Shown here in pieces: positions 2,438 to 26,009 of a stretch of 26,009 nucleotides of DNA (within the stretch, counting starts at the first letter, position 1; every line of letters starts with the position of its first letter). The stretch is from Vitrella brassicaformis CCMP3155 (lineage: Eukaryota; Protista; Chromerida), in contig CDMY01000737.1 of the NCBI GenBank assembly GCA_001179505.1, forward strand, positions 1 to 26,009, written 5' to 3'. The notes beneath the pieces are model-generated. The model was not told where the DNA came from and made no database searches. It saw only the letters and a program-made list of their open reading frames with translations. A program made the translations under genes and the position numbers.

Positions 2438-2805
2438 ATGAACGCTTCTCTGTACATACCTGCGTACGCACGCCGGTACCTGCAATTGGATGTATCGAGT
2501 GAATGATCCTGTATGCGCACGCCTGCGGATAAACGTCGATAGTTGGATGGGGTGTGTGTTGTGATGCCTCTGTGCGCATACCTGCGTATGGACGCCGCCA
2601 GCCAGTAGCACATACGCACCAGCCATCCGACTTCAGGTATGCGCAGGTGTGCGCACGAAGACATTCATTATATATTCCCTCCAACTACATACACAGGGTG
2701 TGTGCAGGCGTATGCAGAGAGGCTCCGGCTACAGATATGCGCAGACGTGCGCATAAAGACGCTCATTGTATGTGTCATCCAACTATAGTTGTATAGTTGT
2801 GCGCA
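2438..2805. repeat. Fold-back arrangement of the ~59-bp repeat family: ~3 reverse units (2438-2592) facing ~3 forward units (2636-2805)
   Basis: The reverse complement of cctctgtgcgcatacctgcgta (~2568) is tacgcaggtatgcgcacagagg, which matches forward tatgcgcaggtgtgcgcacgaagac (~2638). Similar matches occur at ~2511 and ~2442. Confidence 0.7.
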
Positions 2806-3032
2806 GCTCAGCGCTATTCCGTGCCAACTATCCCGCCCTTTGTGCGTCGTCGTTTGAACCTCTGGTTGACGGCCACTTCCCCAGGGGCCTCATTTCCGCA
2901 CCCACCATTGCCGAGCATCACGTGCACGACATCTCCCACCAGCCCACGAGCTCAGCGCTATTCCGTGCCAACTATCCCGCCCTTTGTGCGTCGTCGTTTG
3001 AACCTCTGGTTGACGGCCACTTCCCCAGGGGC
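2805..3032 (+). repeat. Perfect 84-bp direct repeat (2805-2888 and 2949-3032) with a 60-bp spacer
   Basis: agctcagcgctattccgtgccaactatcccg...cacttccccaggggc occurs twice with period 144. The ORF track also shows SSALFRANYPALCASSFEPLVDGHFPRG twice. Confidence 0.95.
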
Positions 3033-3392
3033 ATCACTTATGTGCACTCTATATGTCAAGGGTTGATGATCTATGACGGACTCGGTGGGTGGTCGGGCAG
3101 AGGGTTACATTTGGCATGCTTGCAGTGATTGAATGGAAGGGACAGCTAGCTAGTTTTTAGTTTGCATTCTTGATGGACTCCTCGTGCTGACGCGCTTTCC
3201 GTTAATCTCGTGCACCCATAGTTGTGCGCAGGCGTGCGCAGAGACACATTCTTCCATTACTGATGTCTTTAGTGGCAATGAATGCCAGCGAGAATCGTTC
3301 TGACCGACCTGAGAATGCATCACCTTCCTCGTTTGCTTGACGATCCTCCCTCAGTCTGGTCAATCAATGTATTGGATATGATGAATGCGGTG

Positions 3393-3825
3393 AATGATCG
3401 ATAGAGACACTTTCCATACACACACTCCAAGCACACACTGCAAGTGGACGCGTGACATTTATCATGTACACACGCTCCAAGTCCAATAAACGTGCATGCG
3501 CAGGTGTGCGCACACAGACATTCATTGTACACACACACCAAGTCCAAACGTGCATGTGCAGGTGTGCGCACAGACACGTTCCTTATATACGCACCCTCCA
3601 AGTCGACGCGTGCATATGCAGGCGTGGCACAGAGACATTTATCATATACACACACTCCAAGTCGACGCATGTATGCACAGGTGTGCGCACAGAGACGTCT
3701 TTCATACACACACTCTGAGTGGGCGTGTGCATGCGCAGGTGTGCGCACAGACACATTCCTCATACACAGGTGTGCGCACAGAAACATTGTCATACACATA
3801 CACTCCAAGTCCAAACGTGTGAGTG
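3393..3825 (+). repeat. Minisatellite array, ~59-bp degenerate unit (caggtgtgcgcacagaNacatt..atacacacactccaagtc.aNcgtgcatgNg), about 7 units, some truncated
   Basis: caggtgtgcgcac-type starts recur at about 3500, 3559, 3618, 3678 and 3735, then as shorter units. A partial unit lies at ~3220-3262. Confidence 0.9.
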
Positions 3826-4390: not shown

Positions 4391-6282
4391 TCACCCCAGC
4401 CCCGAAGCGGGGCTGGTGTGTGGCCTATATGGCCCGCGGCTGACGAAGTCCTCGGGAAACGCGCCGGGTCTCCGTGGCCCTCTGGCGGCCGCAGCGCGTT
4501 GTGCACGACTCGCCACTTGAAACGCGTTGTGCTTCATCAGCTCGACGGACAGAAGCTGGCTCCAGTGGTTGATGATGCTCTCTCGGAAGGCTGCGTCCTC
4601 CTCCGTGGGAATGGAGGTAGGGCGGGGCTTCCGCTTGGCGAGCATCTTGAGAAAATCCATGGTCTTCTCTGCCCACCTGCCGAATGTCTCCGCAGCGAGA
4701 GGCACAAAGCGGAAGCCGGCTGCTTGGGCGGTTGGTCCATACTTGTCGATCTTGTCTTTCACCGCAAGCTGCGCCGTCTTGCCACCTGGAAGTTGTGCGC
4801 TACGCCGGTTGACTGTCCGGTGGAAGGGGATAGGGGAGTCGTCAGGACGGCAGGGGTGAGCGATGGTGACATCGAGCAAGTAATCACTGCCGTCGATCAC
4901 GCAATAGATGTCCATGCGCTGGTTATTGGGGTTGTCGTCGGGTGGGGTGATGCCGAGGCTGTGCAGAGGCACCTCCACATTACAAGGAACATCCGCCTCA
5001 GCCAGGATGCGAACAAACAAGTTGCGCATATTGTTGTGTCTCGTGACCCGCTCACGGCCGGTGTGACACACGTAGAAGTGATCGCCAAACTTGTCAACCT
5101 CCCCGCCGCAGATGCATCGCTGCAAGACGGTTGCGTGCGGGAGGGCAATGCCGAGACACCCGGCGACGGCATGGCGATACTGGAAGTTGTTCAGTGTCTT
5201 GCTGTCGCTGGAAGGGATTGCTGACAGCCAACCAGACGAGAGAGGCCCTTGGCAGCTCAAGAGACGGGCGCGGGCTCTGCTGTCCGGCGGAAGAGAGTTG
5301 AAGAGCTCGTTGAACCGAAACTTGTGCAGCTGATCGGTCAGGCGCTGCTGCAGCCGGACCTGCGGTCTCGAGACAAGGTCCTGGAGGGAGGGGAGGGAGA
5401 AGGAGGGACCGACCACCTCAGAGACGGCAGCGAGGGCAGGGACTGCAGCTTGGAGCCAGGGCAGGTCCAATAGGGCAGCGGGCCCACCTTGAGGCATCCA
5501 TGGGGCTCCACGGAACCGGCTAAAGACATCAGATGCCGTCACGCCGATCAAGCCCAAAAAAGCCGCACGGGCAATCGTGGTTGCAGAGACAAGGCCGAAT
5601 CCTCCCAGCCGGATGGGCAGCTGCACTTGCGCGGAAACCGAGTCAGGGAAGTCGCCGGGAAAGCGGAACATGCGCCTGAATGCCGTGATAATGGCGGCGT
5701 CATGTCGCTCGGCGGCTGGCAGGGAGACATCGGATTTCGGGGGGAGGAGGCGCAGCCAATAGTTTAGCCGGGGGGATGCACAATAGCGGAGGAGAAGGCC
5801 AGAGCCCTGCAAGCCCATCTGAGCAAAGGTCACGATTGCCTCGAGCAGCGGCTGGTGGCCGGTGGTGATCTTCTCGAGGCTGCGCTGGATGAAAGGGTTG
5901 GCGCCAAGCGGGCAGCCGAGGACAGTGATGCCTTCAGTGGAGCACTTCACGCCGGAAGCGGCGATGTCCGCCGGGATGTCGGAGTCTTGTTGCCAGCGGG
6001 GGCTCCATGCAGCACTCTTGTCTCTCCACAGCTTCAGCTTCTTCTCGGCCAGAAGCTGCTCAGCCCTGTCCACATACCGCGTCGCACGTGTCTCGTCCAA
6101 TCCACCATCGATGTCGTCCATGAACGCACCAACGAAGTCGTCGGGGAACTCCTCTTGCAGCTTGACGAGGGCGGGGTAGAGGCCCAGGCAGAAGAGGAAA
6201 GGGCCCGCCGCGTCGCCTTGCTGGGTGCCCTCCTGACTGAGGATGGTCTCCGTGCGTCCGTCCTCCATGCGATACCACAGTT
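4391..6282 (-). CDS. 5'-truncated RT plus restriction-like endonuclease ORF, ~630 codons without stop
   Basis: Motifs: EGTQQGDAAGP (RT), FMDD (YxDD-type catalytic), VLGCPLG, LPIRLGGFGL (thumb), CICGGEVDKFGDHFYVC (CCHC), RHNNMRN and E...RMDI...LLDVT (RLE PD..D-type). The ORF-finder start at 6394 is a read-through from the host element. Confidence 0.88.
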
Positions 6283-6294
6283 GTCTGGGAACTC
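6283..6294 (+). other. Target-site duplication, right copy (GTCTGGGAACTC)
   Basis: Identical to 4178-4189. Confidence 0.85.
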
Positions 6295-7250
6295 CTCCTG
6301 CAGCTTGAGGAGAGCGGGTGGAGGCCAAGACAGAAAAGGAAGGGCCCAGCAGCGTCGCCCTGCTGATCCTCACCTGGCTCAGGATAGTCTTCACGTGACC
6401 ATCCTCTATGCGATACCACAGTTCGGCCGCGTTGCCGTAGAACTGCCAAAAGAAGTCGGTTAGGGAGGGCCACTTGCGCCGAGCTCGTCGAGGATCGCCT
6501 GGCGGTCGATGGAGTTGAAGGCGTTCTTACAATTCAGAGTGACCAGCACACGGCGGGCTGAAGGGTCCCTCTGTGTGTCGATGAGGGTTTGGGGGGCCCC
6601 AAAAAAGCTGCTCTCCCCTGATCGAGGTGCTCACAGCGAATTGAAAAAGTCATCTTCGAAAGCCAACTTGTTCTCCATGCAGACCGCCTTTGTCACCCAA
6701 CGACGAAGCACGTCGCCCACGGCGATGGGCCGAAGTCCTCCACTGTCCCTTCACCAAGGCGAAGAGACATGCAGCGGCGATGATCTTGGTGCAGCCTTCC
6801 GGCACGTCTCCCTCCCCCGCGAGCATCCGTTGGACAAGAGAGGGCAGAGGGATGCTCTGGTCATTCGCTTAGCGTCGCCCTCCCCCATACAGCGGTGAAA
6901 TGCTCGTATCGCCGCCCCGTTGGGCCCCCCGCCGATCCTCGTGGAGCCGTCTTAAGGGCGGCAAGCAAGACAGCAGGCGAAATGGTGAGCGGCCCCTGCC
7001 GTTCGTCCGTGGAGTTCTGGGGCTGTGGTCGAGTAGGCAGGGGGCCGTTCGGGTACTGTTCATTCTCGTATTTGTTGCGTTTATATGTGGGTGAGACTCG
7101 CGTGGGTGTAGAGCTACCGAGAGTTTGGGTGAACAGCTGCCCGCCTAAATGTCCAGCCGGCTGGATGACCTTGAAGCTTCACAGGTTGGCGAAATCAAGC
7201 CTCTTGCGATTGTGGTCCCCGCGTCGCAGCCTTTGGGAAGCGGGTAAAAG
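6283..7250 (-). mobile_element. Proximal part of the older, frameshifted host CRE-like element (N-terminal RT domains)
   Basis: Minus-strand fragments in changing frames: LKTAPRGSAGGPTGRRYEH, CTKIIAAACLFALVK, VGDVLRRWVTKAVC, LNCKNAFNSIDRQAILDEL, KWPSLTDFFWQFYGNAAELWYR, QQGDAAGPFLFCLGLH and LQEEFPD. Confidence 0.82.
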
Positions 7251-7295: not shown

Positions 7296-9756
7296 TCCCC
7301 ACAGACAAACAACCAGATCAAAGAGATGAGCAAGAAACAAACCAAGACAACCGAAAACGAAAGTCACACAGCAACCGAAAAACAAACAACATCGAATCAC
7401 TCCAAATGCACGACACACAGTCACCCAGACAAACAGTGCAAACACACAAAGCATACAGACACTGCCGTGCCCAGACACATAGCACAATGCGCACGGCATT
7501 CCTCCACAGCAATCCGCCAGTCCACAGCGTTGGCTGGTGTGGGGGCTGTACGGCCTGATGAAGTCTTCTGGGAAAGCGTTGGCCCTCCGGGGTCCTCTGG
7601 CGGCAGCTGCTCGCTGTGCACGGCTGGACATCTGGAAGGCGTTGTGCTTCATCAGCTCCATAGACAAGAGCTGGCTCCAATGATTGATGGCGCTCTCACG
7701 GAAGACTCCATCCTCGACAGCAGGGATCGCCGCCGGGCGGGGCTTGCGCTTGGCGAGCATCTTCAGGAAGTCCAGGGTCTTCTCTCTCCACCTTCCGAAT
7801 GTCTCTGCAGCAAGGGGGACAAAGCGAAAGCCTGCCGCTCGCGCGGCAGGGCCATACTTGTCGATCTTGTCCTTCTCCGCGGGCGCTGCAGCTTTGCCAC
7901 TGCCCGCCGTGCCGATTCACCGTCCGGTGGAAAGGGATATTGGAGGCGTCAGGGCGGCAGGGGTGGGTGATGGTGATGTCGAGCAGGTAATCACTGCCGT
8001 CGATCACACAGTAAATGTCCATGCGCTGACTGTTGGGGTCGCTGTCGGGCGGCGTAATGCCGAGGCTGTGCAGGGGCACTTCAACGTTGGCGGGGATGTC
8101 CGCCTCCGCCAGGATCCGGACAAACAGGTTGCGCATGTTGTTGTGTCTCAGAATCCGCTCGCGACTAGTGTGGCAGACGAAGTAGTGATCGCCAAAGTCG
8201 TCAACCTCCCCGCCGCAGGTGCTTCGCTGCGTGACGGTTGCGTGCGGGAGGGCAATGCCGAGACACTCGGCGACGGCGCGGCGATACTAAAAGTTGTTCA
8301 GCGTCTTGTGCTCGCTGGAGGGGATGGCAGACAGCCAGCCAGATGAGAGAGGGCCTTTGCAGCTCAGCAGGCGGCTGCGGGCTCTGCTGTCCGGTGGAAG
8401 AGAGTTGAAGAGCTCATTGAAGCGGAACTTGTGCAGCTGATCAGTCAGGCGTTGCTGCAGCCGTACCTGCGGTCGAGAGACCAGGTCTTGAAGGGAGGGG
8501 AGGGAAAATGTGGGGCCAACCAACGCTGACAAGGCGTTGAGAGCAGGGGCTGCCGCTTGGATCTAGGGTAGGTCAAAGGCTAGGCCGTAGGCCCGCTTTG
8601 AGGCATCCACGGGGCAGCTCGGAAGCGGTTGAGGACGTCGGCTGCCGTCATTCCGACCAAACCCACAAAGGCTGCACGCGCAATCGTCACTGCCGAGATA
8701 ATGGCGGCGTCATGTCGCTCGGCGGCTGCCAGGGAGAGATCGGGGTCCGGGGGAAGGAGGCGCAGCCAATAGTTCAATCGGGGTGATGCACAATAGCGGA
8801 GGAGTAGGCCCGGTCCTTGCAGACCCATCTGAGCGAACGTCACGATAGCCTCAAGCAGTGGCTTGTGGCCGTCGAGTATCTTATCGAGGCCGCGCCGGAC
8901 GAAAGGGGTGGTGCCAAGGGGACAGCCGAGGACGGTGATGCCTTCGGCAGAGCACTTGACACCAGACCTGGCGATCTCGACAGGGATGTCGGACGGTTGC
9001 AGCCAGTGAGGGCTCCAGGCAGCGCTCTTATCCCGCCGCAGCTTCAGCTTCTTCTCCGCCCGGAGCTCCTCCGCTCTGTCCACGTATCTCGTCACACGTG
9101 TCTCGAGTAATCCACCGTCGATGTCGTCCATGAAAGCGCCCACAAAGCCGTCCGGGAACTCCTCCTGCAGCTTGACGAGGGCAGGGTGGAGACCGAGAAA
9201 GAAGAGAAGCGGCCCCGCGGCGTCGCCCTGCTGGGTCCCTTCCTGACTGAGAATGGTCTCGGCGCTACCGTCCTCCATACGGTACCACAGCTCAGCCGGG
9301 GTGCCTTAGGACTGCAAGAAGAAGTCGACGAGCGAAGGCCACTTTGTGTCGAGCTCGTCCAGAATCGCCTGGCGATCGAGTTGAAGGCATCCTTATGATC
9401 CACAGTCACCAGCACACGCCGACCAGAAGCAGTTGTGTCTCTGTGAAGGTCTGGCAGGCCCGAAACAGCTTCTCACCGCCTGCCGAGGTGCCCACAGCAA
9501 ACTGCAAAGGAGAGAAGTCGTCTTCGAAGGCAAGCTTGTTGTCCATGCACACCGCCTTCGTCATCCATCGCCGCAGCACGTCGCCGACAGCAATCGGCCA
9601 GACCCCCCCCGTTGTCCTTGACTAGCGCAAAGAGACAAGCAGCAGAGATGACCTTGGTGCAGCACTCGGGCATGTCTCCGGTGAGCATTCTGCTGACGAG
9701 GGAGGACAGCGGGGACTGGTCCTGCGCTGTCGCATCCCCCTACCGCGTAAAGTGTA

Positions 9757-9828
9757 CCGCTGCTTCCTGATAAGGTGACCTCGAAGCTTCTCCGCTGCTT
9801 CCTGATAAGGTGACCTCGAAGCTTCTCC
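9757..9828 (+). repeat. Perfect 35-bp tandem duplication (ccgctgcttcctgataaggtgacctcgaagcttct x2)
   Basis: Units start at 9757 and 9792. Confidence 0.95.
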
Positions 9829-16609: not shown

Positions 16610-17030
16610 ATACCTGCCCATATAGGGACAGAGGGGTGGCAGGCAAGCCAGAGGATGGGGGACTGAGGGAAAGGGCACCAGAGAAAGGCCACATTGTCAT
16701 GTATCCATGCATCCATCCAATGCGAACACCCTACGGTCCCACCGCTGAGAACACTGTATTTATAGACACCGACCACACAGAGGCAGAGAAGGGGTAGAAG
16801 GTAGGCTAGAGGAGGAGGGAATGAAGGAAAGGCCATCACAGAGAGGGAGGCTGCAGCAATCAATCACCGGCTGAGTCCACACTGCTCTGAGTCCACACTG
16901 CTCTGTCTCCGTACAATGCGAGCCTTCTAGGCTTCAACAGCAGAAAAAAATACACATACCGACCATGCAGGTGCAGAGAAGGGGTAGAAGGCAAGCCAGA
17001 GTAGGATGGAACGGAGAAAGGCCACTACGA
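16610..17030 (+). repeat. Three degenerate purine-rich repeats (accgacc..cagagaaggggtagaaggcaagccagag...gaaaggcca)
   Basis: Similar blocks near 16610-16690, 16766-16836 and 16957-17024. Confidence 0.65.
16871..16905 (+). repeat. 16-bp tandem duplication (ctgagtccacactgct x2)
   Basis: Direct inspection. Confidence 0.9.
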
Positions 17031-17037
17031 GACAAGG

Positions 17038-17471
17038 TGGCAGAAAAGAGCAAGGTCAGTGCGTTCGACCATTGAGTTCCTGAATACTGCAGGCTGCGGT
17101 GTTCATACTTACTCACGCGCTCAAGCTATCAAAAAGGACCCCCACATACACTTTATAAAGGGAAAAAGAGTGAGACAGCCACGTACAGAAAATCACCACC
17201 CGGCCAAGAAGGTCAGGTGGGTCAAAGAGGACGCGTTCACTTACACCTGTGTCATGGCAGAAAAGAGCAAGGTCAGTGCGTTCGACCAATGGGTTCCTGA
17301 ATACTGCAGGCTGCGGTGTTCATACTTACTCACGCGCTTAAGCTATCAAAAAGGACCCCCACATACACTTTATAAAGGGAAAGAGAGTGAGACAGCCACG
17401 TACAGAAAATCACCACCCGGCCAAGAAGGTCAGGTGGGTCAAAGAGGATGCGTTCACTTACACCTGTGTCA
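17038..17471 (+). repeat. 217-bp tandem duplication (17038-17254 / 17255-17471), about five substitutions
   Basis: tggcagaaaagagcaaggtcagtgcgttcgacc...ttcacttacacctgtgtca occurs twice. Confidence 0.97.
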
Positions 17472-19195: not shown

Positions 19196-19513
19196 GAAAA
19201 TGAAGAAGGGAAGAGAAAGGCACCCACGGAGCGATGCAAAACGCACTCGCAGCGACCACAGAACCCACCCAAGGGGCTCCTATCGTCACTTTGCGTCACA
19301 GAGCATACTGAAAAGTCTTTCATGTCCCACAGGTACTGGGACACCGATCGAGGAAGCGATGAGGACAGCGTTTGTGAGGAATCGTCTGACAGTGCAGAGA
19401 ACCGCTGGCAGTGCCTGCGAATGCAGATCAAATGTACGAGGGACGAATTTGTCTCAGCCAGCCAGCAAGCCGAATGAAAGGAATGCGAGCTGGGTGCGGT
19501 GCGAGCTAGAGAT

Positions 19514-19679
19514 AGTTGGAGTATCAGCAGTAGCTCGGGGTAGCGAGTAGGAATGTGACGAAGCCGGAAGAAGCATTCAGTGACGACGGAGGTCTCATGG
19601 ACACGCAAGCTTGGGTCCACAACCATCGCAAGTCATGTCTCGTAGATCTCGCCCGTATAACTCGGTCTCCGCTCTAACT
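19514..19679 (-). repeat. 3' LTR (166 bp)
   Basis: Identical to 22541-22706, with termini AGTT..AACT. Confidence 0.95.
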
Positions 19680-19688
19680 CCCCCTCTC
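19680..19688 (-). other. Polypurine tract (GAGAGGGGG) immediately upstream of the 3' LTR
   Basis: Plus strand ccccctctc directly abuts the LTR. Confidence 0.8.
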
Positions 19689-19729
19689 GCTCGTCAGCTT
19701 TTGCTTGTCGTTGCTGCCGAGCGCTCATC

Positions 19730-20506
19730 ATGAGGTGTTGGCGGTCAGCGAGATCATCGAAAAAGAAACAGACGAGGTGCTTTTTCGGCTGTTTGTCAGC
19801 TCACAGCAGCTCGTCAAGCCATGCGGATGACGCTTGGAGAGATGGGAGGCATCTTGTGCTCTTACTACCACCTCCGCATCACCACGCGGCTTGGCACGGC
19901 ACTCACATGCACATCATGAACATGTAAGTGTGCCTTTTGTTGTTCTGACTGGCTGTCTGCCTTATCTGTCTGCCTTTCCTGCCTGTCTGTCCTTTTCTAG
20001 GTCCAGACTCGGCTGCAGCAGAAGATACACACACACGTAAGCATGTGTCAATGTGAATTGTGTTTGTTTCTTTTGTTGGCCTCAGGGCTTGTGACGAAGC
20101 GCCACGCAAACATCCTGAAGACCATGGTGCTGATGTGTCTGCAGCCTGAGCTGACCATTCTTGGGTCGCTCTGCTGTCACAGACATCAGCTACTTACCTG
20201 ACGGTCGATAGCGCCTTTATTTCTATTGCTTACCTTTTCTCGGTGCCTTTTGTGTTTGCCTTTTTCGCTCTTTTTCTTGTCTATACGTATGCGGTCACTG
20301 ATGGTGGGTTTGCTTGCCTGTGTTGGCTTGTCTGTCTCCCCCTCTTGACCGTATAGGTGAGCGAGGCATTAGAAGCACATGACGTGGCAAACATGCATGC
20401 CAGCTTGCTGAGTCAGATAGAACAGCCCTACATGAGAACTGCTCTGTGTCAGTTTCTCGAATCACAAGAGAGACTGCAGGCCATGCGGATATTCACGGCC
20501 ACGTGA
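19730..20506 (+). other. Antisense, intron-containing passenger region inside the LTR element
   Basis: Intron-like 19924-20000 (gtaagt...ccttttctag) and 20037-20085 (gtaagc...ggcctcag), plus an acceptor at 20356 followed by 49 open codons (VSEALEAHDVANMHASLLSQIEQPYMRTALCQFLESQERLQAMRIFTAT*). Confidence 0.45.
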
Positions 20507-21524
20507 GGGTGTACAGTCCTCACGAGTCGTGATGTCCGTGCACACGTGGCGGCTTTCAATCTTCCCATCTTCTAGATAGGTGGCTCTCGCCTCACACAGT
20601 ACTTCTGTGAGTGTCTGTGGCGATTCTGAGGGCTATCTCAGTCGTCCCTCGCTTTTGCCATTGCATCGCTCTGTGCCTTGTGTGTCTATAAACACACAGT
20701 GGCATCGGCATGCAATGGGTAAGTCAGACACATTTGTTTTGTTAGACATCTGTGATGTCTTTCTGGTGTGCTGCTCGACCTAGCTATCTGTCTTTGATGC
20801 AGCGAGCAGGCACACACATGTGTCTAGACGAGCTGAGACCGCATCAGGCCAGCTGCGCTATTTGTGCGCTGTGCTGTTATTGCTTTGCCTAATGCCCCCT
20901 CTGAGCTCAATGCCCAAGGAGTGAGCCAGCAATTGAGAGTCAGGCTAGGTTTTCGATGAACCCACTTAGGACGCAGAGCATCATCAATGCATTTTATGTA
21001 TGCATGCGACGCTCCACCGTGCGCTGGTCCGTGACTCAATGCTGTACATGTTTGATTTTGCGTGAGGGACATCTGGACTTTGAAATAGAGGTGACGAATC
21101 ACTTGGTGCAGCCATTGCACATGCTCTTTGACTGCATCTGAGCAATCACATCACTCTCTAAGTCCTTTCCCTCTCACACGCACTGTCAATGTGTTCCTTG
21201 ATCAAAAATATGACTGCACGCAGACCAATTCCTCATGGAATCGATCAACAGCGGATCACTTCTCTCTCTGTCAGTTCTTTCTCAGCCCTCATCAATCAAT
21301 GCACACTTGTCATCGATCGATCAACCAGCCGGCAGACCAATCGACCAACAGACGGCAAGATAGCACTGAGTGAGTGACGAGAAGACGAGAGAAAGAAATA
21401 CTTCGTACATATACAGACGTGCATGACGTCCATGTATACGTACACACAGCGTCACTTGTACCAGCCCCCTCTGTCTTCGTGAGCTCTTGGGTGGCCAGCT
21501 AGTGCGCTGTAGTCTTGTAGAGCC

Positions 21525-22409
21525 TCATTCGTCTGGCTCAGATCCATCGTCACTGTCTCGCATCTCTTGCAGCATACGGCCGAGCACTCGACATTCATCT
21601 GTCGTGTGATTGAACAGCGGACGTTCTCGTCGTGTCGGGCAGAGACGGCAGAATAGTTGCCGGCGCTCTTGGGTGGCACCAGCAACGGGCAATGATATCA
21701 CAGTCGATGCTCCCTGTCCTGTATTGCGTCCAGACAGGGTGTGCGAGTCAGATGGACCATGCGTACCGTCACCGAGCTCCGCAGGAATGCGGGCGGCCAT
21801 ACGGCGCATCTTTTCGTAAGTGAAGTCCACCTGCCCGATGAACACACTCCACAGAAAAGCACACATTGGGTTCGCTCTGTGAGCACCCAGACGCACGATC
21901 ATCTTCTGTACGACGTCGTCTTTTGTGCGCCTTTCTGTACCATACGCCTTGTTGACGGCAAGTGAGAGACGGTCAAGGTCTCCAAGATTATCCATGAAGC
22001 CCTTGCTCTCATCGTAATCCCACCTGTCGTATTCGACGTTTATCTGTGAACGCCTCTGCTCGATGCTCGGCTCATATCTGCGACGCAGAGCCAACAGAGA
22101 CACACACCCATCGTGTGTTGTGGTTGCCTCCTGGACCGTTCCTTGACAGTCCTTGCCCTCTGTGGCCCTGTCCAGTGCTCTCCACAACATCCATCTCTCC
22201 ATCCTCATGTTGCGGCGTTGGACATCTGTGAGCGACTCGTCAGCGAACTTCACCGACAGCTCGTCATCAGTTGACGGATGAAAGTACTTGGCCATGCCAT
22301 CGATGCCATAGAACATGCCAGCGAACGACTGACGCCAGCTGTGGTAGTCGCTCTCTTTGCCGCTGAAGCGAGGAGGGTTGGTGGCGATGCCATCAGCCAT
22401 CTGTACCAC
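21525..22409 (-). CDS. gag: Copia-type Gag (UBN2/Retrotran_gag-like) with an atypical C-terminal zinc knuckle, 294 aa
   Basis: PPRFSGKESDYHSWR N-terminus, LLALRRRYEP central motif, CRLC-X10-H-X4-C, and position directly downstream of the PBS. Confidence 0.85.
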   Translation of the reverse strand: MVQMADGIATNPPRFSGKESDYHSWRQSFAGMFYGIDGMAKYFHPSTDDELSVKFADESLTDVQRRNMRMERWMLWRALDRATEGKDCQGTVQEATTTHDGCVSLLALRRRYEPSIEQRRSQINVEYDRWDYDESKGFMDNLGDLDRLSLAVNKAYGTERRTKDDVVQKMIVRLGAHRANPMCAFLWSVFIGQVDFTYEKMRRMAARIPAELGDGTHGPSDSHTLSGRNTGQGASTVISLPVAGATQERRQLFCRLCPTRRERPLFNHTTDECRVLGRMLQEMRDSDDGSEPDE

Positions 22410-22530
22410 AACTCACTGTGTGGCACTTGTTGGATGACGTCACGTTGCTCGGTCATCATCACCGGGAGATGGTGTCTCGTCAGATGGTGAGGGAAGGCAC
22501 GCCAAATGGCTCATCACACCCGAGGTGGGC

Positions 22531-22540
22531 GTTCATAACC
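22531..22540 (-). other. Primer-binding site GGTTATGAAC
   Basis: Directly follows the 5' LTR. GGTTATGA is complementary to UCAUAACC of a tRNA-Met anticodon arm, the priming mode known from Drosophila copia and yeast Ty5. Confidence 0.75.
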
Positions 22541-22706
22541 AGTTGGAGTATCAGCAGTAGCTCGGGGTAGCGAGTAGGAATGTGACGAAGCCGGAAGAAG
22601 CATTCAGTGACGACGGAGGTCTCATGGACACGCAAGCTTGGGTCCACAACCATCGCAAGTCATGTCTCGTAGATCTCGCCCGTATAACTCGGTCTCCGCT
22701 CTAACT
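22541..22706 (-). repeat. 5' LTR (166 bp)
   Basis: Identical to 19514-19679. Confidence 0.95.
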
Positions 22707-22829
22707 GAGATGGCCACGGGCTATTGGCCACAGGTAGGCCACAGGTTCATGTATGACTGCGTGAATGCATGTCCATGAACGATAGGCAGTGCAGAGCGTT
22801 TTGTTCAACCATCATCGAACTCAGAGCCA

Positions 22830-23195: not shown

Positions 23196-25720
23196 ATGGG
23201 GTCACTCAATCTCGAAAGGAAAGCCACCTTTCTCGTCTCTACCGGCAGGAGTGGTGAAAATGAGATCAAGTGGCACGAATGGGACTTTACCCTGAGAGCC
23301 CATCTATCAGCAAGAGGGATGGATGTGTCGGTCTGCCTACCAACGAAAGATGAGGACGTCCCCCCGCTGAAGATACGCGTGCTGCAAACAGATGCCAACG
23401 ATCAGCCCATGACTCATGATGGACAGCCAATCGTCGTCGAGCAGGGCAATCCTAATGCGAAGAACATTCGATGGCTGTTCGGCTTCCTCGCCCTACAGAC
23501 AGCAGACAAGGGGAAGCGACTGATCCAAGAAGCATACCAGAAGCATGGCGAGAACGGTGCACGGGCCCATCTGGAGGTGCGGAAACGATTCATACCTGAT
23601 CGAGCAGTCTGCAAGCATGAGCTCTTGCAGAGATTCTTCAACTAGAAGATGGTCAAGGACAACCTTGATGACGCCCTTGGTGACTTCAGCTATCTCGTCG
23701 GCCGCCTCCACGACATCGGACCAACAGTGCCTGACGAGACGATGATCGCCGTCATGCTGTCAGCATTACCTGAGAGATTCGACATGTTCAGGGCAACGAT
23801 GAGCGCATGAGTCAGCATTTCGCGCGTTTCGTGGGGAGCCACTCACCTGGCCTCAGTTTGAAGAAGCCCTGCGCAGCGAGACCGCCAAAACTAGCAGACG
23901 GGTCGCCCATTCGACCGGCAGCACGAGCGCCAAGACCACCTCAATAAGCAGCATATTCTGATAACGACAGGAAGGGATGGACAGACAGGCGACCTGACAA
24001 TAGACAGCAGAACAACACAAACAGGAGCAAAAAATAGCTATAATTGTAGGAATCAGCCCGACGACACCAACAGGCAGAGCAGCAACTAATATGCGCACCC
24101 TCCCTAGCACACCAGGGATTATGAATGTGGGCAGCAGCAAGGACGAGGAGAACAACAGCAACAAGGGTAGCGAGCCACAGACCGTCGCGACAACGATGTC
24201 GATGTCATCATAAATAGTGCAAGGGCGCGGATGAACGACAACAAAAGGACCAATCGACGCAATGGCCGCCAATATGCCAACCAGCTCGACATCTACAATG
24301 AAGAGCAACAGCAATATGACAGCAATGAGGACTATGCAACGATTGGAGCAATCGAGATAGAAGAGCTAGCGGAAGAGGTCGCGTATGTCAACGGTGCATG
24401 CTCATCTTCACCTACAGCAATGATGGTGGACCCTGGAGCGGCGCAGTCATGCTGGTTCAAGAAGTAGCTCGTTAGCGACATCAAGCCGCTTGAACGAGAC
24501 ATCAATGTCATCAGGGCGAATGGAACGAAAGCCCAAGTTGTGGGTGTCGGCTGTATCAAACTCACCTATAGAGAAGTCAACAAGGACAAGAAGAATGTCA
24601 TGGTGGATAACGTGCTGTTCGTTCCCAAGCTTCAACCTGCTCTCCCTCGCACACCTACCTGGTCGACGACTACAGCCCGAAGCTTGAGATTGATCATGGT
24701 GCTGCATTCTTGAAGGCACGGAGAGGGATATGTATCCATTGATGTGAGAAGGGCGGTTCTGCTATATCCACATCCACAAGAACCCCTCTGACTGCCCAAG
24801 TGCTACCGATGAGCCAGTGGTTGATGTTAGAGCAGCCGCAGACGCCACTGGTGGACGACAGCAATAGAGAGTCGGCAGATGTGATGACAGCAGACATACT
24901 GGTCGCAGAGGTAGTCATTCGAGAGCGATTGCATCAGTGATCCGCCCATATCAACGAATCTTACCTCAAGAAGTCACCTACATTGACAAGACACGCACCA
25001 GCAACTAAGAACGACAACACTGAAGCGCCAAGTGTAGAGAAGGCTAAGTGTGAGGTGTGTTTGAAGGCCAAGATAAAGCGCCAGCCTTACGTGGCTGATG
25101 CGTATCGACATCAAAATGCAACCATCTCACACGTCGACCTGTCGCAAATCAAGCAGCCCAGCGAGAGAGGATACAAGTACCTGACGGTGATTGTTGTCGA
25201 GGCATCAAGGTAGCTGCAAGCTTACTTCCTCAAGGACAAATCTGAGGCGCCCGGAGCATCATCAACCACCACACCGCAATCCACATGTCTAAGGTTGTGA
25301 CAACGGATGGTCGGGCAGAGCTCATCTCAGGCAGATGGAAGGAGCTCTAGGAGACGCATCAGATACGACAGGAGAGAGGTTTGACATATCATCATCGCAG
25401 ATGGAGTGACTGAGCGGACTATCGGTGTGATTTGTGGGATGGCACGAGCCCTGCTCTTCACTGCTGGCCTGCCAGCGTCCTACTGGTACTATGCGATAGC
25501 GACAGCAGCGTACATCAAGAGCCGCACGCCAACAGCAGCCAATGAGGGGATGAAGACACCACATGAGCTCTTCATTGGCTATCCGTCTACCATCAGCCAT
25601 GTCCACACATTCGGCTGCCAGGCACACTTCAACCAAACGAATGAGACGATCAACACGGGAATTGGTGTTGTCATGTAATGTAGTGTTCGACGAAATCATA
25701 CTACCTGCACAGCAGAAGGC
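23196..25720 (+). mobile_element. Decayed Ty1/copia gag-protease-integrase with stops and frameshifts, probably continuing past the window
   Basis: Gag: KWHEWDFTLRAHL and MLSALPERFDMF. Protease: MMVDPGAAQS. IN zinc finger: LHQ*SAHINESYLKK...CEVCLKAK. Core: SHVDL...GYKYLTVIV, TDGRAE, GVTERTIG...ARALLFTAGLPASYWYYAIATAAYIKSRTP...KTPHELF...FGC. Integrase directly after protease indicates copia order. Confidence 0.92.
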
Positions 25721-26009
25721 ACCAAAAGCATCGCCAGCTATCATCCCATCTACTCACAGGGGGGGAAACTGTCATTAACCGTAACACTCGTCTGTGTGTC
25801 CGTGATACTCATACAAATACAGTCCCATCAGCACGCAGAGTCAAAGAGGCTTAACGGGAGGAGGGATCAATCCCCGCCCCATCAGCACACCCCAGTCCCG
25901 CAAACCCTCCCCTCCCTCCCCCACGCAGACAGAAGCTAGTCGCACGCGCGAGGGCGATAGACAAGCGAGAGCGAATCCATCCAGACACATGACTGAACCC
26001 CCGACCCTT

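Follow-up and report, generated by a model that had tools for sequence, protein, structure and literature searches.

Long terminal repeat (LTR) retrotransposons that encode the capsid protein Gag and carry no reverse transcriptase (RT) have been described in plants as TR-GAG elements, for which structural criteria were laid out by Chaparro et al. 2015 (PMC4350172). The same article cites BARE-2 of barley as a non-autonomous Copia element depending on BARE-1, and work on priming in this superfamily has established that copia and Ty5 prime from internal cleavage of initiator tRNA-Met (PMC5371799). The genome of the chromerid alga Vitrella brassicaformis holds only about 1.5 Mb of transposons, reported in bulk classes only, including 93 kb of "putative TRIM/LARD" (terminal-repeat retrotransposons in miniature and large retrotransposon derivatives; Woo et al. 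2015, PMC4501334). Here we analyze a 26,009-nt stretch of V. brassicaformis CCMP3155 (contig CDMY01000737.1, positions 1 to 26,009 of the forward strand; hereafter the window) that contains, at positions 19514-22706, an LTR element with a gag gene and without pol. We put at roughly 80% the probability that this element inserted recently and belongs to a non-autonomous family of V. brassicaformis or a very close relative, one derived from Ty1/Copia and mobilized in trans. It is an element of the TR-GAG type, well known in plants, in a host that is new for the type, a chromerid alga of the Alveolata.

The element is bounded by two repeats of 166 nt each (19514-19679 and 22541-22706) that are 100% identical and in direct orientation, giving a total of 3193 bp, within the approximate 4-kb limit of TR-GAG elements. 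The pentanucleotide GAGAT is present on the plus strand at both ends (19509-19513 and 22707-22711), constituting a 5-bp target-site duplication (TSD) for which the chance of a 5-nt match is about 1/1024. Because the sole long open reading frame (ORF) between the LTRs (21525-22409) is on the minus strand, the element reads from right to left, and on its own strand the order of features is 5′ LTR (22706-22541), a block GGTTATGAACGCCCACC at the position of the primer-binding site (PBS), a leader, gag, an internal region of 1845 bp (19680-21524), the purine tract GAGCGAGAGGGGG (19680-19692) and 3′ LTR. The purine tract directly abuts the 3′ LTR, as the polypurine tract (PPT) of a TR-GAG element does. 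The original prediction, made from the sequence alone, had reported identical 166-bp LTRs, a 5-bp TSD and a PPT, and on these points it proved exact. The LTR tips read AGTT...AACT in all gag-only copies and thus depart from the canonical TG...CA termini of Copia, which are a usual, non-defining trait of Ty1/Copia. An Rfam scan of the whole window returned no match.

Cluster look-up and contig retrieval brought to at least five the pol-less insertions in the CCMP3155 assembly, the window copy included, and added one copy from an environmental metagenome, providing the several copies of the same structure that characterize TR-GAG elements. Their 5-bp TSDs differ. At L001:1257-4449, a copy of 3193 bp shares the layout of the window element and is 95.8% identical to it; its TSD is GAGGA and its LTRs are 98.8% identical. 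L010:9753-11132 is a 1.38-kb LTR-gag-LTR derivative flanked by the TSD CTTAG, and its LTRs match each other exactly over 142 nt. It lacks the interior and the initial 23 nt of the 3′ LTR, its break coming after a second GAGGGG purine tract, just past the gag stop. L009:6557-7158 is the 5′ end of a copy at a contig end, with TCAAG as its 5′ flank, and L008:9751-13935 spans an N gap at which the two halves overlap by about 700 nt. The flanks of L008 are unlike (GCGGG and, on the 3′ side, TCAAG as in L009), and this scaffold probably joins halves of two different insertions. The metagenome copy, L007, is permuted and 93-94% identical. The six sampled copies differ from one another by 4-6%, and none of them contains pol.

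Because multiple pol-less insertions carry different TSDs, the gag-only element is a propagating non-autonomous family, and a one-off deletion derivative is rejected on copy number and distinct TSDs. The check that accompanied the original prediction, a count of same-structure copies with different TSDs, came out in its favor with L001, L008/L009 and L010, plus L007 from the metagenome, and the case named as fatal to it, a single copy whose interior aligns to decayed pol or sisters that are full-length, did not hold, given that the element is multi-copy and has no sister with pol. The window copy has an open gag, as does L008 in its 5′ part. The gene is broken in most genomic copies, by a 4-nt deletion in L001 and by the same frameshifting 10-nt deletion in L009 and L010, and also in L007 (a 1-nt deletion and a stop). 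Since L009 and L010 share this deletion yet differ in TSD, RNA with a broken gag was mobilized as well. Gag is evidently not needed in cis for transposition of the gag-only family, and in view of these two insertions the suggestion that the element relies on its own Gag is not supported.

The gag ORF comprises 294 codons from a GTG or 291 codons from the ATG at 22400 (21525-22400, with the stop at 21525-21527). A word search with its product returned just two proteins, both near-identical, of which one is from V. brassicaformis CCMP3155. An exhaustive HMMER search covering 1.84 billion representative proteins yielded five matches in all, of which the single informative distant one, P0003, is a 607-aa V. 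brassicaformis Ty1/Copia Gag-protease polyprotein that aligns to Gag residues 2-286 with 47% identity. The two proteins align collinearly and share a conserved C-terminal C-x2-C-x10-H-x4-C motif. Past its Gag part, P0003 runs into Pol_BBD, the domain that forms the protease barrel in Copia polyproteins. Full-length identity of 47% to the N-terminal part of a Gag-protease polyprotein justifies the Gag label, so that the single ORF of the element, in keeping with the TR-GAG layout, is by homology and by position a Copia-type Gag. A profile search of solved structures gave chance-level matches only, and a single-sequence AlphaFold model was unusable (predicted local distance difference test, pLDDT, 35). 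The ancestral gag start lies 20 codons further upstream, in frame in five sister copies, and the autonomous Gag shows homology to these 20 codons at its N-terminus.

Four Vitrella "unnamed protein products" of 70-292 aa (CEM38859.1, CEL98549.1, CEM38461.1 and CEL93487.1) are gene models laid over gag copies of the element, some such models carrying spurious introns or frame changes. For annotation purposes, these Vitrella "uncharacterized proteins" are Gag fragments of the gag-only element.

As predicted, and as in TR-GAG elements generally, pol domains are missing: Pfam detected no protease, integrase or RT domain in any of 16 internal ORFs on both strands, and only short non-coding remnants of protease and integrase can be discerned. 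The internal region is 94-96% identical among family copies. About 0.55 kb of its 1.85 kb (about 30%) aligns, partly out of order, to the autonomous relative described below. The aligned segments are a gag-protease linker (20455-20566, minus strand; about 77% identity to L006:695-784, out of order with respect to the next remnant), a protease/integrase junction (20844-21220, minus strand; 68% over 371 aligned nt, with blocks of 80-90%) and the region preceding the PPT (19680-19746, minus strand; 82.6% by blastn over element positions 2982-3065, running into the LTR). In tblastn, the junction remnant matches the integrase N-terminus with 36% identity over 75 aa. The rest of the interior matches nothing in the sequences compared. 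The description of the interior as 1.85 kb of unrelated sequence in place of pol consequently needs correcting for the 0.55 kb of rearranged pol.

Because these segments align to the autonomous family, the gag-only family began by internal deletion and rearrangement of a Copia element, and since the pol remnants (68%) have diverged from that family as far as gag and the LTRs have, the split is old. A captured host gene or cargo in the interior, the latter proposed in the original prediction, is rejected: the region has no domain-bearing ORF and about 30% of it is traceable to dead pol. Within the interior, the gag-only family and the integrase region of the autonomous family have in common a purine tract, GAGGGGGC, and some 30 well-conserved bases after it (about 20890-20920, minus strand; alignment columns 390-430). 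The tract is similar to the 3′ PPT and could be a central PPT.

An autonomous partner sharing LTR ends and the post-LTR block had been anticipated, and relatives of this description were found in the same genome (L011) and in the metagenome (L006 and L012). In L011, a Vitrella CCMP3155 contig, gag, protease and integrase come after an LTR and extend to the contig end. A contig assembled from a public run, L003, is 100% identical to it over 2953 nt, and the 607-aa Gag-protease encoded by an MMETSP transcript, L005, is identical to that of L011. The L011 LTR begins AGTTAGAGC and ends CTCCAACT; after it come GGTTAT, four bases that vary, and GCCCACC. In L006 the PPT, GAAGCGAGAGGGGG, is near-identical to that of the gag-only element, and the PPT-LTR junction is the same in L012, where it sits at the contig end. 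The L011 family shares LTR tips (AGTT or ACTT in autonomous-type copies), primer-site block and PPT with the gag-only family, whereas the LTR interiors have diverged to about 70% identity. L006 carries, in the order typical of Copia, the domains Pol_BBD, gag_pre-integrs, rve, SH3_retrovirus and RVT_2, showing the succession of protease, integrase and RVT_2-type RT that marks Ty1/Copia by descent, and it shows homology to the window element in gag, LTR tips, PBS block and PPT. Since L006 and L012, both about 93% identical to L011, come from the same metagenome sample as gag-only L007, the two families co-occur in two sources. A scan of metagenome DNA with the LTR-end/PBS pattern recovered only the contig already found.

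In-frame stops occur near the protease/integrase boundary of all three relatives (L011:4096-4098, L006:1347-1349 and L012:1134-1136), lying 17 codons further on in the metagenome copies than in L011; they could reflect independent decay or a recoding site. Another contig, L002 (JGI 3300017297), which matches the element from LTR position 52 onward, has gag joined at about codon 250 to 77 nt of integrase (L002 1091-1167) that are 98.7% identical to L011:5066-5142. The junction has no shared k-mer and the 5′ end carries 83 unrelated nt (1-83); the contig may have arisen by chimeric assembly or by recombination of co-packaged RNAs. The Copia-like element that neighbors the insertion in the window (23196-26009) was considered as a helper and rejected, its gag match being weak (33% over 51 aa), its integrase about 31% identical to that of L006 and the LTR-end/PBS motif occurring only once in the window.

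Among non-coding sequences, the block that directly follows the 5′ LTR (22524-22540, minus strand) is the best conserved between the gag-only and autonomous families, with 13 of 17 nt in common. It begins TGG, the T being the last LTR base. A tRNA scan of the window and eight loci detected no tRNA gene, and the PBS of the original prediction is thus a putative one, a block conserved in position. As a lead only, we take the start of the block, GGTTATGA, to be the complement of the anticodon-loop side of tRNA-Met, at which the primers of copia and Ty5 anneal, with its first eight bases presumably complementary to UCAUAACC in that loop. The block is two nt longer than a simple complement of the initiator tRNA-Met anticodon stem-loop.

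Several lines of evidence bear on age, selection and expression. In the interior of the window copy, 24 of 1624 columns show private substitutions (1.5%). Had these arisen after insertion, about 4.9 LTR differences would be expected, and none is seen (P about 0.007), so that the insertion is young and its source copy lies outside the sampled ones, in agreement with the recent transposition originally proposed. The two further checks suggested at that stage, on selection and on expression, also gave positive results. Pairwise ratios of non-synonymous to synonymous rates (dN/dS) among gag copies, computed with the Nei-Gojobori method, range from 0.25 to 0.47 (binomial p from <0.001 to 0.043), for pairs that are not independent and with a method that ignores transition bias. 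Past constraint on Gag is likely, and present constraint is not apparent on the window lineage. An intact 291-aa Gag, P0010, is an MMETSP transcript product, as is the Gag-protease of the autonomous family, P0003.

The explanation we favor is that an autonomous Copia element lost or rearranged its pol region and kept the LTRs, primer-site block, PPT and gag. RNA would be made from the 5′ LTR, on the minus strand of the window, and Gag would be translated from this RNA. Protease, integrase and RT would come in trans from an autonomous Copia family able to recognize these LTR tips, this primer site and this PPT, and the 5-bp duplication would be generated on integration. We infer that this family is of the L011 type, for which cross-mobilization of the gag-only element is plausible but unproven, and an intact helper is to be expected, although the sampled autonomous copies are all defective.

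A number of observations weigh against this interpretation. The capsid assignment meets with silence from domain and fold searches: Pfam returned no match for the gag ORF, including its UBN2 and Retrotrans_gag models, and an alignment-based AlphaFold model, all-helical and weak (pLDDT 58), gave no Foldseek match below E 0.6. Capsid entries (Copia, PNMA2) did appear among the higher-probability Foldseek rows and were not counted as evidence. The gag gene of the window copy, described originally as an intact 294-aa frame, is open over its 291 codons from the ATG but has lost the ancestral first 20 codons (22402-22459, minus strand), which a 1-nt deletion at 22403/22404 has put out of frame so that they open an overlapping upstream ORF; the same deletion is found in the transcript-like contig L002. 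Private changes have accumulated in this gag (14/876) as fast as in the interior, and on the window lineage about 10 of them are non-synonymous to 4 synonymous. On the side of the helper, the two Gags are 47% identical and the LTR interiors about 70%, which is why cross-mobilization is rated no more than plausible, and the predicted active helper is not supported by the sampled copies. The stop of L011 follows protease, and this copy has two frameshifts in addition; in L006 and L012 the stop falls between protease and integrase, and the reading frame changes ahead of RT. None of the three sampled autonomous copies therefore pairs with the gag-only element as a source of intact protease, integrase and RT. 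A word search with the autonomous RT found no annotated Vitrella RT protein of that family.

In an alternative reading, the helper is an unsampled full-length sibling with near-identical gag and LTRs, of which the gag-only copies would be recent internal-deletion products. The source lineage of the window copy is unsampled, transposon proteins are poorly annotated in the assembly, contigs break inside elements of this sort, and L002 joins the gag of the gag-only family to an integrase almost identical to that of L011. However, the exhaustive protein search found no Gag-Pol with a close Gag, the nearest longer protein being the one at 47%, and because all six sampled copies are pol-less and 4-6% apart, the pol deletion is older than the diversification of the family. 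Pol remnants that have diverged from the autonomous family as much as gag has point the same way, and we regard a full-length sibling as unlikely. The defects of the autonomous copies could suggest a family that is no longer mobile, in which identical LTRs would result from gene conversion or assembly collapse and the copies would be relics, a view with which the broken gag of most genomic copies and the assembly misjoin inside one copy also agree. It is nonetheless very unlikely in light of the window copy and L010, separate insertions that both retain identical LTRs and intact TSDs, of transcripts with intact ORFs, and of 1.5% private divergence accompanied by zero LTR differences, an improbable combination for an old insertion.

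Two further proposals concern the function of the retained protein. Truncated Gag is known to restrict Ty1, and the Gag of the gag-only family might likewise serve chiefly to inhibit the autonomous element, as a capsid that is dominant-negative or that controls copy number, and not to package the RNA of its own element. That Gag is dispensable in cis, given the frameshift common to the independent insertions L009 and L010, and that the older pairwise dN/dS values lie below 1, so that the protein mattered to something, would both suit this idea. The ORF nevertheless resides in a multi-copy mobile element and not at a fixed host locus, and the window lineage lacks current constraint, leaving the proposal barely credible. 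More tentatively than our favored reading of a trans-mobilized Copia derivative, and with considerable doubt, it is possible that the gag-only family is an old, self-sustaining "satellite" of a Copia element that retains a diverged capsid because it forms or enters particles packaging both RNAs. Such co-packaging would explain the fusion of gag to helper integrase in L002, and, if true, would reveal a capsid-encoding parasite of retrotransposons in the closest photosynthetic relatives of apicomplexans.

The remainder of the window contains other repetitive sequences. The neighboring element rejected above as a helper (23196-26009, plus strand) is a degenerate Copia-like element of another family that adjoins the insertion on the opposite strand, with a gag-like ORF (23196-23645), a protease-like piece with D-x-G-A (24231-24467) and integrase-like pieces (24983-25213 and 25406-25678; 31.5% to the L006 integrase in tblastn). 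Within it, positions 25761-25858 match L001:1-98 at 95%, upstream of the gag-only copy of L001. On the minus strand, a GC-rich unit (about 60%) with weak RVT_1-type RT matches (E 4e-6 and 4.5e-4) occurs twice, at 4391-6473 and 7555-9292. The two copies have diverged to 78-84% identity, lie about 3.0-3.1 kb apart and are probably a tandem pair of non-LTR retroelement fragments. Tandem or short-range repeats are found at 2444-3811, including a 91-nt repeat at 2805/2949 and a 58-60-bp array around 3450-3810, at 9757-9826 (35 bp twice) and at 16632-17471, where 217 bp occur twice (17038-17471) in an A-rich stretch.

Our results extend the TR-GAG type from flowering plants to a chromerid alga. Because the transposons of Vitrella amount to only about 1.5 Mb, a full census and testing of the family and its candidate helper would be feasible, and the copies already form a natural series for the study of cis requirements, ranging from autonomous-type through gag-only and gag-defective elements to a 1.4-kb LTR-gag-LTR derivative. 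The gag-only family may have been counted within the "putative TRIM/LARD" fraction of the Vitrella genome. It resembles LARD and TRIM elements in being LTR-bounded, devoid of pol and, on our reading, mobilized in trans, with the 1.38-kb L010 nearing TRIM size, and differs from them, as they have no coding capacity, in keeping a Gag ORF. Like BARE-2, it is a Copia derivative that would rely on a related autonomous family with shared cis signals. BARE-2 is said to have kept its pol region and to lack functional Gag expression, the reverse of the Vitrella element. With Ty1/Copia it has in common a related autonomous family in Gag-protease-integrase-RT order with RVT_2, and from copia and Ty5 it is set apart by LTR tips other than TG...CA. 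The closest correspondence is with the plant TR-GAG elements, as the original prediction had held, for the structural criteria of PMC4350172 fit the window element in every respect other than tRNA complementarity of the PBS, which is a putative one by position and conservation. Like them, the Vitrella element measures less than 4 kb, has LTRs, a site at the PBS position, a PPT, a 5-bp TSD and a single Gag ORF without RT, and is multi-copy and transcribed, with young insertions and a Copia-related Gag. Unlike them, it resides in a chromerid alga, the published uses of the term that we found all concerning plants, and it combines a Gag that the UBN2 and Retrotrans_gag models do not recognize with discernible pol remnants and AG...CT tips.

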